Below are positions 1-4,839 of a DNA stretch of 64,000 bases, in pieces. The position numbers and the translations under genes are program-made. Where the stretch lies: assembly GCF_000315625.1 (NCBI RefSeq), contig NW_005434599.1:68846-132845 (forward strand), read 5' to 3'. Under the pieces are notes generated by a model that did not search any database, had not been told where the DNA came from, and was given only the letters and a program-made list of their open reading frames with translations. The stretch's first letter is position 1, and every line of letters begins with the position of its first letter. The DNA comes from Guillardia theta CCMP2712 (taxonomy: Eukaryota > Protista > Cryptophyta).

Positions 1-933
1 AAAAGTAAAGAAGAAAAAAAAGACCTCCTCCTCCTCCTCCTCCTCCTCCTCCTCCTCCTCCTCCTCCTCCTCCTCCTCCTCCTCCTCCTCCTCCTCCTCC
101 TCCTCCTCCTCCTCCTCCTCCTCCTCCTCCTCCTCCTCCTCCTCCTGTCGATCCCATCATCGCTCTCTCGGTCGCGTGCTTGCTCCCCTGCAGCTCCTTC
201 ACCACAGGAGCAGAAGCATCGGCACATTCAGCCGCCATCAGCGGCAGCAGCGCCTTCCCCAGCTTCCCGTAGAGGTCAGGAAAGATCTGCTCCTGCGCTG
301 CCAGCACCATCTTTATCCTCGCTCTCTCCTGCGGCGCCTCGAAGCATCCCGGGCAGTTCTCGTTGATCACCGGCAGCTTCTTCGCCATGGCGAACTCGCG
401 CGTCACCTGCTCCCGCACGTAGGTGAGTGGGCGAATGATCCGCACAGCATGCTCGCGCGCCAAGTAGTTGGCCTTCATCGTCCTGAGCTGCCCGTTGTGG
501 AAGGCCGACATGAGGAAGCTCTCAGCCTGGTCGTCCAGGTGCTGACCCAGGGCGAGCACGTTGAACCCCTCCCTCTCGCACACGCTGTAGAGGACCCCTC
601 TCTTCATCCGCGAGCAGAAGCTGCAGATGCTGTTCTTCTGCAGGCTGCAGGACGCCTGCTGGATGATTCCGTGAGACTCGTAGAAGTAGGCGACGTTGAG
701 CTCCTGCAGGTAGGTCTTGAGCGTGCTCGGGTCGTACTCGGGCGTCTGCGGGTCTACTGTGCATGCGGCGACGTCGAACTTGATCGGCGCCTTCCTCTTG
801 AGCGCGAGGAGGATGTGGAGGAGGGAGAGAGAGTCCTTGCCTCCTGAAAGACCGACCAGCACGCGATCTCCGTCCTGAGAGGAGAAGGAGGTTAGCGCGA
901 GGCAAGGGAATGAGCGGAGAGCTGAGACGCAAG

Positions 934-1018
<85 letters not shown>

Positions 1019-3515
1019 CGAGTGATGGGCACCTTGATCATTCCGAAGTCTTGGATCGCTTTCCCGACTGAACTCATGAGCTTTTTCTCTGCCTTCTGCG
1101 CTCTCTTGTGCATTGAAACCTCGTCTTCTCCTTTCCCTTCCGCTACTTTGCCACTGCTCATCTGCTTTTCAACTTCCTTCCCTCCTCCTACCCTCCCCTT
1201 TCCCTCCTTCCCCTTCCCTTCCCCTTTCCTCTTGTTCTCCTCTCCCTTCGTCTCCTCCTCCTTGTGCTCTTCATCCTTCGGCATGGCTCTCCATCTTTCC
1301 CCCAGCACACGCAGCATGTCCTCTGTGGTAGAATGCGGCTGACGAGCTAGCAGCTCCTGCAGGAGGCGTCAGTGATTGTGGGGGAGGGACAGGAGAGCAC
1401 TCGGACCTCCTGCTGCTCCCGTGCGAACCGCTCGAAGCTCGCTTGCCTCCGAAGAACCTCCTCCACCGCCTCCTCGTCCATCCCACAAGGCTCGTGACCC
1501 TCGGGCACGAAGGCGGAGGAGGGATGGGAAGCAGGAGCTGCCTCCTTCCCTCGCAGCTCCGCCAGCGCCTCAGAGGGCAGCAGGAACCAGCGGAGTCGGG
1601 CAGCGTCCGGACTCCCGATCGCCTTCTCCTCCCCTGCCAGCTGACTGTCTGTGACCATCGTCGGCCCCACAGGCTTCCCGCCCCTCGCTGCCTCCTCTAT
1701 CTTCCTGACAACCTCCTCTGCCATCTCCATGTTCCTCTTGAAGTTTGCCTCTAGCCTCTCCAAGAAGGTCCCATCCTCCTCCTCCTCCTCCTCCTCCCCA
1801 CCAGCGTCCCCAGCTGACCGCGAGCTCTTGTCCTGGCTGAACGAAACGTCGCTCATCCATTTCCTGTGTCGCAGCATGAATTTCCTCTCGCTCCGATGCC
1901 TCCACTCCCCCGTGCTTGCATTGAACGTGTACAGGGGGAGCATCCTCCACCCCTCCCGCGCCACCCACAGCAGGGCCTGCAGCATGTAGTCCACCACGAA
2001 CTCAGGGAGGAAGAAGGCGAAGTTCAGCCGCACGAAGCCAGGACGCAGCAGTTCATCACCCAGCAGTAGCGCATGCTCGTACTCCTTTGCCAGGAGGAAG
2101 TCGATCCCCAGCAGGCGCTGAGCATACGGCCCAGCACAGGAGCATCCGCTGCGAGCCTGGATGCCGAAGAGGTCGTTGAGGAGAGCAGAGACGAAGTTGA
2201 AGTGCAGCAGCTTCCCGCCATGCCGCACGTTGAACGAGACCACAGGCAGCCGAGCAGCCTTCACCTTCCCCAGCACCTCCAGCTCCGGCTGCTGTTCGAG
2301 TGCCTGCAAGGCCCTTCTCCATAGCTTCTCCTCCTCCTCCATGATCCTCTCAGCCCCGACGAACTCCTTGAGCCTCATCGCGAGCCCGCAGCGAATCGAC
2401 CCGACGACGTCAGGCGTTCCTCCTTCCTCCCTTTCCTCCAAGTTCTCCAGGTAGCGGTGGTCGTGCTCGGTAACGAAGAACACAGTCCCTCCTCCGGGTA
2501 CTGAGGGCCGCGCGCCTCCCCCGAAGATGAATCCCTTCCCCAGCAGCGACTTCTTGAAGGCCAGGACCCCGGGGGAGGAGACTCCTCCTACGAACTTGTG
2601 CGGGGAGAGGAAGATGGCGTCTTTGTGAGCCAAGTGCGCGTCCTCCCCGAAGGCAGGAGGGTTCATGTTCACAGGGCAGTAGGGGCCAGCAGTGGCGAAG
2701 TCGAAGAAGGCGAGGGCTCCATGCTTGTGCAGCGTGATGGCAACCTGGACGGTGTCGACGAGGATGCCTGTGATGTTGGAGGCAGCAGAGAAGGACCCGA
2801 TCTTGACCTTCCTCTCTTTGTGAAGCGACAGAACTTGTTCAAGGTGTGCAAGGTCGACTCCGCCCTCCTCCTGCTCCCTCACGACGATGATCTCGCTTCC
2901 TGTCTCTCTCCATGGCAGGAGGTTGGAGTGATGCTCGTATGGTCCCACAACCACCAGCGGTCGCTGACCTGCCTTCATGCACTCCCTCCACATCTCGCTA
3001 GACCTCAAAAGCTCCACCATCTTCACCACAGCTCCTGTGCATCCTGTGCCCGTGAAGATGAGCGAGTCTTTGTTGTTGTCGCAGCCCACGCATCTCCTTA
3101 CGATCGACCTCGCCTCTGCCCTGAACAAGGTGCTCTGCATGCCTGTCGCAGAGGCGGTGGTGTGGGTGTTGGCGTAAAGGGGCAAGACTTCTTTGCTGAT
3201 GAACGTCTCGATGGATCGCACGGCTCTGGCTGAAGCTATGTAGTCTGCAAAAACAACATTCCTTTCTCCGAAGGGAGTTCGGATCACAGACTGCACTCCG
3301 ATCTGATCCAAGAAAAGCTTCTGCCAGAACCCGGCAACGTTGTCGCTTGCCAACTTGAACTTCGCATTTCCCTTTTCAGTGATCTGTTTGTCTTGCCCCC
3401 TGCCCTTCTCCTCTTCCTCCGTCTCTTCTGCACCATCATCATCCTCTCGCATCACTGATACCTCCAGCTCTGCATTCTCGTTGAGGAACGAGGCGAAGCG
3501 CCTCCTAGCCGCCAT
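1..3515 (-). CDS. Fusion protein: class-V PLP cysteine desulfurase (SufS/CsdA-like) + HMG-box-like linker + TtcA-like PP-loop tRNA thiolase; 3' end runs into poly-Gly and off the window
   Basis: Exons 3515(or 3557)-1407, 1356-1033 and 874-<146 are joined by phase-0 GT-AG introns 1406-1357 and 1032-875. Desulfurase motifs: FADYIAS, DAIFLSPHKFVGG (PLP Lys), RSGCSCAGPY (catalytic Cys). TtcA exon by hand translation: DGDRVLVGLSGGKDS, CSFCSRMKRG, LALGQHLDD, IIRPL, NENCPGC. Confidence 0.85.
24..146. repeat. (CCT)n microsatellite
   Basis: Perfect trinucleotide run; reads as poly-Gly in the TtcA frame. Confidence 0.95.
936..1017. repeat. (CAG)n microsatellite inside intron 875-1032
   Basis: Perfect CAG run between the inferred splice sites. 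Confidence 0.95.
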
Positions 3516-4122
3516 GGGCACGTGTGCTTTACAGAAAGTGCCGAAACTTTGAAACATCGAAACTTTGAAACTTTAGCTCAGACTTACTTCGAAACTTTGA
3601 AAAATGCCGGTCCTAGGGCCTAGATGATGGAATGATCTCGAACAGGGTTAAGACCACCCATACCCTCCGAAAAACAAATAAAAATATTTACTTAATATAT
3701 TTTTCATATAAAATAGTGAAATTGGACCGTTGACTGAAAGATTGGATCCATCATTTCCCCGCACTACCCCTCACCCTTTTGGTTCCTACAACACTACCCA
3801 CCCCAAGTCTCTCTTTGCCCCCAGTACCCACCCCTCTTGCAAAAGTTCTCAAACTGAAGAATGGTAATCACTACCCCCTATTCTGAACTATAGTTTTGCC
3901 TTCTGAGGAGGGGTACATTTACCACCCCCTGCTACGAACCAGGTGAACCACCTACAGTCTCCACCAACACAATTTCATCCCCGGGTAGGTAAAAATCACC
4001 CCCACCCACCTTTTTCCATGATTATACCCCCTCTTTCCTCTCCCACTCTGCTCCAGAACCTCAGACCACCCACACAAAAAATCACCCTACCCCCACCTAC
4101 GACCCCTCACGATAGCTCGCGC

Positions 4123-4839
4123 ATGCTGAGCTCGGCGGAGGCAGCGGCGGTGGTGGAGAAGGCGGCGAAGGAGGCGGGTGATGTTGTGCGTTCTGTCTCA
4201 GATCCCAAGAAGAAGCCTCGAGAGCTCCGTCCTGCTACCAAGAAGGCGGTGGAAGAGGTCGTTCGCACGGGGAGCCCGGCGGCAGTTCTGCAGCACATCA
4301 AGGCCCACAGGAAGGAGTTCATCAGCGCCGTTTTCTCGAGCGTTTTCATGTCAGCTATCAGGAAGCAGCTGTCAGGAGAGATCAGTGAGGAGAAAGATGC
4401 TGAGAAGTCCTCAACGAGCAAGGCGGCTGGGTCGAACGGACACGATGATGTGAAAGTGGATGCTAGCTCCAAGAGGACCCAACCGGTCAGCGAGGAGGCG
4501 GACAAGAAGAGGAAGCGGAAGGCGGGGGAAATGGATAGCGAAACAGAAAAGAAGAAGAATGAAAAGGAAGCGAAGAAGGCACCGATCAAAGCAAAGGAAG
4601 AGGAATCAGATGAAGAGGCGTCCGACGACGACGAAGATGACGACGTAGAGCTGTCTGATGACGCAGAAGATGATGATGACGAAGACGACGACGACGATGA
4701 AGAAGATAGCGATGATGGAGATGAAGAAGAGGAACCCGTTGAGAGTCCTAAGAAAGCTGGGAACAATGGTCCTCTTAAGGGAGGGAAATCACAGAAATCA
4801 GCTGACAGCGGAAAGTCGAAGCAAGACAAAAAGAAATGA
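4123..4839 (+). CDS. Lys-rich/acidic hypothetical nuclear protein
   Basis: Open frame from ATG 4123 with coding-like GC. It has a helical N-terminus, NLS-like KKRKRK and a long D/E tract. The upstream part of ORF 3943 is intergenic ACCCC-rich sequence. Confidence 0.7.
   Translation: MLSSAEAAAVVEKAAKEAGDVVRSVSDPKKKPRELRPATKKAVEEVVRTGSPAAVLQHIKAHRKEFISAVFSSVFMSAIRKQLSGEISEEKDAEKSSTSKAAGSNGHDDVKVDASSKRTQPVSEEADKKRKRKAGEMDSETEKKKNEKEAKKAPIKAKEEESDEEASDDDEDDDVELSDDAEDDDDEDDDDDEEDSDDGDEEEEPVESPKKAGNNGPLKGGKSQKSADSGKSKQDKKK

Follow-up and report, generated by a model that had tools for sequence, protein, structure and literature searches.

The DNA analyzed here, referred to as the window, is a 64,000-nt stretch of the nuclear genome of the cryptophyte alga Guillardia theta (contig C75, positions 68846-132845). 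Its left end carries, on the minus strand, a gene in which a cysteine desulfurase is fused to a TtcA-type transfer RNA (tRNA) thiolase. The fusion, first proposed in an initial annotation made from the sequence alone, is genuine: in G. theta, the desulfurase and the TtcA exon are part of one mRNA. The two-domain reading is, however, already public. A protein search identified GUITHDRAFT_158402 (P0001, 997 aa) as 100% identical to the window-encoded protein; it is labelled “hypothetical protein” and has both PF00266 and PF01171 already annotated. The exons, introns and ends of the gene are as follows.

1407-3515, minus strand: exon 1, coding part from the likely start M15 (MAARRRF...), within the 736-aa open reading frame (ORF) 3557..1347
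1357-1406, minus strand: intron 1, 50 nt, GT...CAG, from transcript contigs and contiguous homologs
1347-1349, minus strand: TAG closing the unspliced ORF, out of frame once spliced, from the sequence
1033-1356, minus strand: exon 2, with the remainder of an HMG-box-like module, a Lys/Glu/Gly-rich linker and the first TtcA helix (KKLMSSVGKAIQDFGMIK, 1086-1033), from the open frame and contigs
875-1032, minus strand: intron 2, 158 nt, GT...AG, mostly CAG repeat, from loose contig ends and TtcA homology across the junction
1-874, minus strand: exon 3, TtcA-type PP-loop domain followed by a tail and poly-Gly, 3' end incomplete, from the open frame and profiles
26-145, minus strand: GGA repeat, poly-Gly in the open frame, after which the gene exits the window, from the sequence

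The ORF at 3557..1347 (736 aa, minus strand) was confirmed. Its stop codon had been placed inside a 50-nt GT-AG intron at 1406-1357; the intron itself is borne out by RNA, while the stop, TAG at 1349-1347, is found 8 nt beyond the acceptor and is bypassed through the frame shift that removal of the 50 nt causes. Transcript contigs X1, X2 and X4, which derive from three runs in three studies, skip exactly these 50 nt, and the skipped ends read CT..AC on the plus strand, i.e., GT..AG on the gene strand. Contigs were placed on window positions 1021-4300, and exon 3 and intron 2 are visible only through loose ends at 1032. Each of the three assemblies has such an end, whose 30 letters are unique in the window and lie at 844-873; the loose ends thus join 1033 to 874, the first base of exon 3, bypassing the CAG-repeat intron at 1032-875. 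Both junctions predicted from the sequence are therefore present in RNA, and open frames and contigs agree that removal of introns 1 and 2 preserves the frame into exon 3. Contig depth is zero over the intergenic region 3551-4100, indicating that the contigs represent transcripts and not DNA. In both X1 and X2, a single contig extends from exon 3 through exon 2 and 360 nt into exon 1, and the contigs break only at a GAG repeat (1766-1809), on either side of which X2 depth is alike (14.5 versus 13.8). The raw RNA-seq run X19 contributed only three reads and was uninformative.

Homology across the junctions provides a second line of evidence. The exon 1 tail (ASFERFAREQQE) and exon 2 head (ELLARQPHSTTEDMLRVLGERWRAM) align end to end and with equal spacing to a contiguous segment of the homologs P0003, P0009 and P0011. 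At the second junction, the last part of exon 2 continues into the first part of exon 3 as a match to E. coli TtcA, covering its N-terminal helix and PP-loop. Relative P0011 (1195 aa) occupies almost all of a 3965-nt Logan contig as one ORF, and this contig is presumably a transcript as well.

Transcript structure also bears on whether the two domains ever function as one protein. The fusion might only coordinate expression of two separate products, generated by proteolysis of the linker or by translation of an mRNA that keeps intron 1 and terminates at TAG 1349-1347. Retention of intron 1 does yield a complete 736-aa desulfurase ORF, three stand-alone desulfurase paralogs exist in G. theta, the linker is Lys/Glu/Gly-rich and weakly conserved, and cleavage has been suggested for a fused protein of Aplysia (10.64898/2026.09.27.754811). 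However, all three transcript assemblies show the spliced form only, an unspliced mRNA would have no obvious route to translation of the TtcA part, and the architecture is kept across distant eukaryotes, suggesting selection on the physical link. Separate products are accordingly considered quite improbable.

The Joint Genome Institute (JGI) model of the gene, GUITHDRAFT_158402, appears to be wrong at three places: the start, the intron-1 donor and the terminal intron. A Hanusia phi transcript protein (P0002) starts MAARRRFASFLNENAELE, equal to ORF residue 15 onward; the likely start codon is therefore 3515 (M15) and not 3557, an earlier in-frame ATG, or 3452 (M36), the JGI start. Transcript contigs extend to 3499. 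The JGI intron-1 donor at 1457, which defines a 101-nt intron, was ruled out, as the RNA contigs use 1406; it would also drop 17 residues, among them FERFAREQQE, that homologs conserve. The 43-nt terminal intron and early stop (150-230) were also rejected, since P0009 and Hanusia P0256 read through this region (...AAECAD...KELQGSKHA.ERAMM). Exon 3 reads through the GGA repeat (145-26), leaves the window at its start and reaches a run of 4086 N (C75:64760-68845), and the sequence past these 4086 N has no evident coding tail. In what follows, exons were searched separately, with the database protein P0001 standing in whenever the TtcA domain had to be contiguous. Three long trinucleotide repeats lie inside the gene, GGA at 26-145 (poly-Gly), CAG at 935-1018 (in intron 2) and GAG at about 1766-1809 (poly-Glu), and such intragenic repeats break the transcript assemblies. 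Record 3 of the X1 contigs (3374-3499) is a self-foldback in which 3374-3403 appears on both strands; it probably arose as an artefact in assembling the 5' end of the transcript.

Exon 1 encodes the desulfurase, whose features are listed here.

2112-3251, minus strand: type II (SufS-like) cysteine desulfurase core, Aminotran_5, Pfam E 1.3e-36
2910-2933, minus strand: HHSNLLPW, active-site His motif, aligned to SufS EHHSDLLPW / EHHANIIPW, H195/H196 invariant
2592-2606, minus strand: SPHKF, Lys predicted to bind pyridoxal phosphate (PLP), aligned to SufS SGHK / SSHK, H306/K307 invariant
2127-2153, minus strand: RSGCSCAGP loop, second Cys aligned with the persulfide-forming Cys of SufS (RxGHHCAxP)
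1566-2111, minus strand: family-specific C-terminal extension ending LRWFLLPSEA, with the GAG repeat near 1766-1809, from alignment and model

Assignment of this domain to the SufS/CsdA (group II) type, as originally suggested from its cysteine loop, is upheld by profiles, structure alignments and fold. The best NCBIfam model is TIGR01979 (sufS), and PDB sequence matches are all SufS, CsdB or CsdA. An AlphaFold model of the domain (predicted local distance difference test, pLDDT, 84.5; predicted template modeling score, pTM, 0.86) has SufS-type enzymes as its top 50 Foldseek matches in the PDB, including CsdB, plastid Nfs2 and an encapsulin cargo desulfurase, with template modeling (TM) scores of 0.80-0.87; the best SufS structures reach 0.84-0.87 when normalized to the target. 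The His and Lys motifs (HHSNLLPW, SPHKF) are invariant in an alignment of 39 family members. The RSGCSCAGP loop aligns to SufS RSGHHCALP / RAGHHCAQP, and the pattern R-x-G-C-x-C-A-x-P is found in 54 of 56 family members, fused and stand-alone alike, 52 of which have the A-G-P form. By this alignment, the likely catalytic, persulfide-forming residue is the second Cys of the GCxCAGP loop. Helices of the C-terminal extension are confidently predicted (model residues 580-660), and L641, W643 and F644 within it are nearly invariant in eukaryotic and in bacterial (~584 aa) members. Judged by these features and its profile scores, the domain is a “GCxCAGP” subfamily apart from the curated SufS and CsdA enzymes. 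Three stand-alone desulfurases of the GCxCAGP type were found on G. theta contig C51 (L008, L009 and L010). Their open frames span 817-839 aa, and L008 is almost the same as L010.

A desulfurase of this kind could serve the Fe-S cluster of its partner domain and not the tRNA directly. It would then build or repair the oxygen-labile [4Fe-4S] of its own TtcA, with the tRNA sulfur coming from another carrier or from free sulfide. SufS-type enzymes classically serve Fe-S assembly, and bacterial formation of 2-thiocytidine at tRNA position 32 (s2C32) depends on the IscS to IscU Fe-S route, the proximal sulfur donor being only proposed (PMC5372739). On the other side, a Pfam search found no scaffold domain (SufU/IscU/SufB-like) in the fused protein, and general Fe-S assembly could be covered by further class V enzymes that G. 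theta retains, among them an NFS1-like locus (234 bits). We regard cluster maintenance in place of sulfur donation as unlikely.

Exon 3, which had gone unlisted in the ORF track, encodes the motifs expected of a TtcA enzyme at the positions below.

830-847, minus strand: PP-loop SGGKDS (putative ATP binding and adenylation), identical to the aligned SGGKDS of E. coli TtcA
614-625, minus strand: CSFC, aligned to E. coli TtcA CSLC (Fe-S ligands)
344-355, minus strand: CPGC, the second CxxC, aligned to E. coli TtcA CNLC

Exon 3 matches the PP-loop family PF01171 (E 1.4e-18) and also encodes a GQHLDD motif, and the end of exon 2 (KKLMSSVGKAIQDFGMIK, 1086-1033) aligns to LRRNVGEAIADFNMIE of E. coli TtcA. 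Among thiolase profiles, TtcA (NF007972) is the best by a wide measure, scoring 225.8 bits versus 73.2 for TilS_N, 56.9 for TtuA and 37.4 for NcsA. Grouping with TilS or Ncs6, the outcome that would have spoken against a TtcA-type domain, was thus not seen: membership of TilS (73 bits versus a cut-off of 93.6), of Ncs6/CTU1 (37 bits versus a cut-off of 500) and of TtuA (57 bits, far under the TtcA score) was rejected in each case. A search of the G. theta genome (87 Mb, 669 contigs) identified a separate TilS-like gene (L004, 154 bits) and no second TtcA in its contigs. A side observation is a single ORF on G. theta contig C171 (L006:721-1878) that joins DUF924 (PF06041) to a partial PP-loop, weakly TilS_N-like, which is an unusual combination. 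No solved TtcA structure was matched by sequence, the nearest being those of TtuA and TilS. Three Cys of the CxxC motifs hold the [4Fe-4S] of TtcA, one Fe of which is proposed to carry sulfide (PMC5372739).

The fused gene belongs to an already recognized, biochemically uncharacterized protein family, in keeping with the initial annotation's caution that it might be “uncharacterised rather than unique”. Similar two-domain proteins are annotated and common in protists and invertebrates. The TtcA region is matched by 869 long proteins, and most of the 120 listed carry both the Aminotran_5 and PP-loop Pfam domains; long proteins also prevail among the top 150 clusters of the 50% library. More than 100 sequence clusters contain the fusion; they come from oomycetes, ciliates, choanoflagellates and corals, among others, and the named sources include many oomycetes, Salpingoeca, Acropora, Blepharisma, Percolomonas, a pelagophyte and Paraphysomonas. 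The desulfurase-then-TtcA order recurs in P0009, P0011, P0100, P0179 and others. The nearest bacterial TtcAs are proteins of about 250 aa from Thermithiobacillus, Thiobacillaceae, Hydrogenophilaceae and Gallionellaceae, with 55-62% identity across the full domain.

Trees were built for each domain. In the TtcA-domain tree, 20 bacterial proteins form one clan (support 95/93), and the animal members from Acropora and Rhipicephalus fall inside the eukaryotic group. When rooted with E. coli, this tree places the bacteria “inside” the eukaryotes, an arrangement that was distrusted because the root branch spans 8.16 changes per site, and an approximately unbiased (AU) test was used instead. Eukaryotic monophyly was not rejected (p-AU 0.63, the constrained tree being better by 2.2 log-likelihood units), in an analysis where the E. 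coli root branch is saturated and the Aplysia sequence was left out. In the desulfurase tree, the bacteria again form one clan (support 100), and cryptophyte stand-alone paralogs, including the three G. theta C51 copies, are sister to the cryptophyte fused copies. Groupings in the two trees are broadly similar, which is compatible with one old fusion event followed by vertical inheritance.

Between the two enzymatic domains lies a further module, at the position given here.

1267-1442, minus strand: HMG-box-like module split by intron 1 (ASFERFAREQQE / ELLARQPHSTTEDMLRVLGERWRAMPKDEE), from alignment with the contiguous HMG_box of P0003, P0009 and P0011

With its pieces searched apart, the G. 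theta exon-2 portion alone scores 15.2 bits (E 0.031) against HMG_box (PF00505), versus a cut-off of 25.4 bits, which contiguous relatives of the cryptophyte type narrowly pass (25.7-28.5 bits). A model of the P0009 module consists of three helices with a core pLDDT of 86-88, and all 50 listed PDB fold matches are HMG boxes or HMG-box-like, at E values of 0.016 or worse. At the other end of the protein, P0009, P0011 and P0235 (also P0229, P0387 and P0403) terminate in a hydrophobic stretch of 18-20 residues, mostly followed by basic residues. These C-termini of fused relatives are possibly tail anchors. Two additional observations concern relatives: the fused homolog P0126 has a thioredoxin domain, and the bacterial short TtcA P0296 (L027:2522-5717) lies directly after DsbD and thioredoxin-like genes. 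Both hint at a thiol-redox link.

Taken together, the data lead us to favor a model in which the fused protein carries out an in-cis sulfur relay that makes s2C32, to which we assign a probability of about 0.65. Sulfur from L-cysteine would be captured by the desulfurase as a persulfide, formed on the second Cys of its CSC loop, and handed on to the free iron of the TtcA cluster, presumably a [4Fe-4S], either in cis or inside a dimer. In cytosolic tRNAs, the PP-loop would adenylate cytidine 32 at C2, whose oxygen would then be exchanged for sulfide, yielding s2C32. Such a protein would be the self-contained thiolation machine envisaged in the initial annotation.

Several points weigh against this model. 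At the level of the transcript, the contigs are interrupted at the GAG repeat (1766-1809), so that none covers the whole gene; minor isoforms, whether unspliced or alternative, are compatible with the contig evidence, and the linker could be cleaved after translation. The desulfurase falls below curated SufS/CsdA levels (TIGR01979, 121.4 bits versus a 475-bit cut-off; CsdA, 49.8 versus 607). Type II desulfurases normally require a partner, SufE or SufU, and none is evident within the fused protein. In the four bacterial contexts examined, no operon links the two families: no ttcA lies beside the 584-aa desulfurase homologs and no desulfurase beside the short TtcA genes. The TtcA domain is only ~35% identical to E. 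coli TtcA, and its score lies under the 272-bit TtcA equivalog cut-off (P0001:700-997, profile positions 10-248 of 295), so that the position modified, or the substrate, could differ. Finally, what the data show is the structure of the gene, its splicing, the domain identities, the catalytic motifs and the distribution, and the enzyme activities, sulfur hand-over, substrate and location of the G. theta and protist members are ones that we infer.

The divergence of the TtcA domain raises the question of whether it thiolates another target, be it a different position, an organellar tRNA or some other RNA. Besides the sub-cut-off score, the very long branch (8.16) from E. coli TtcA would fit such a shift, and the HMG-box-like module, like the possible tail anchors of relatives, hints that the enzyme works in a special context. 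Nonetheless, no other model comes close to TtcA, all of whose motifs align, and s2C32 has been mapped in an animal that has the fused gene (10.64898/2026.09.27.754811). Another target is thus judged very unlikely, and, on its profile scores, the C-terminal domain is best filed as a TtcA-like subfamily, not a strict equivalog.

The in-cis relay can be extended, tentatively and with considerable doubt, in two directions at once. The cryptophyte fusion may have gained an HMG-box-like grip on nucleic acid (bent tRNA or other) and a tail anchor (as in P0009, P0011 and P0235), making it a membrane-tethered, self-sufficient s2C32 synthase, and a single ancient fusion may mean that, physiologically, the TtcA [4Fe-4S] receives its sulfur directly from the persulfide on the type II CxC loop.

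If the in-cis relay is correct, it would point to the direct sulfur donor to the TtcA cluster, a step still at the stage of proposal for bacteria; the physical link of the two enzymes constitutes “Rosetta-stone” evidence on this donor. s2C32 was held to be absent from eukaryotes before a 2026 preprint on Aplysia. The RNA evidence presented above places the same fusion, expressed, in a cryptophyte alga, and database and tree evidence extends it to oomycetes, ciliates, heteroloboseans, choanoflagellates and cnidarians. Given this broad and expressed distribution, s2C32 may be a widespread, overlooked tRNA modification of eukaryotes. What is new in the present analysis comprises the domain trees, the assignment of the likely catalytic Cys, which the Aplysia preprint left unnamed, the HMG-box-like module, the candidate tail anchors in relatives, and the correction of the G. 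theta JGI gene model at three places, which is of value for annotation.

Beyond the 5' end of the gene lies a divergent neighbor ORF, 3943-4839 on the plus strand (298 aa), which is very acidic and Lys-rich and is strongly expressed in the same runs, with a depth of 114-416 from about 4180.

The closest known system is that of Aplysia, in which tRNA-Lys(UUU) carries s2C32, described as the first eukaryotic s2C (bioRxiv 10.64898/2026.09.27.754811, 28 September 2026). That preprint reports a 1177-aa “IscS-TtcA” fusion in 28 molluscs, and also in birds and insects, ties s2C32 to the fused gene by correlation only, and raises cleavage of the fused protein as a possibility; it compared the desulfurase with IscS and left the origin of the fusion open. 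In the literature searched, the fusion is described solely in this preprint, and nothing pairs TtcA with Guillardia. The Aplysia gene, LOC101861551, has the same order as the G. theta gene, a CsdA/COG0520-type desulfurase, a long, weakly conserved linker and a TtcA-like domain, and shares the SGGKDS and CSFC...CP(A/G)C motifs. Its Cys448/Cys450 pair is taken to equal the CxC loop of G. theta, and a stand-alone desulfurase paralog is present in the same genome in both organisms. In contrast to Aplysia, G. theta is a cryptophyte whose linker contains an HMG-box-like module and whose close relatives end in a hydrophobic tail; the catalytic Cys is placed here by SufS alignment, and the likeness to Aplysia is known by description, not by sequence.

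E. coli TtcA (b1344) aligns with the G. theta domain at its N-terminal helix, PP-loop and GHH/GQHLDD motif as well as at both CxxC motifs. Unlike the E. coli enzyme, which relies on separate IscS and IscU, the G. theta domain is fused to its own desulfurase, and it is devoid of the E. coli C-terminal tail. The short TtcAs of sulfur-oxidizing Proteobacteria are as close to the G. theta domain (55-62%) as eukaryotic orthologs are to each other, but they are stand-alone genes that form their own clan, unlike the fused form. On the desulfurase side, SufS and CsdA have in common with the G. theta domain the fold, the PLP Lys, the His and the short RxGxxCAxP Cys loop, whereas identity is only ~22-24% and the G. 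theta domain has an extra Cys (GCxCAGP) along with N-terminal and ~150-residue C-terminal extensions. Much closer, at 45-52% identity across the entire desulfurase unit including the extension and the GCSCAGP loop, are uncharacterized bacterial proteins of ~584 aa from Myxococcota, Acidimicrobiia and Alphaproteobacteria, labelled “aminotransferase class V-fold PLP-dependent enzyme”. In contrast to the fused G. theta form, these are stand-alone proteins that do not adjoin ttcA and constitute a separate clan.

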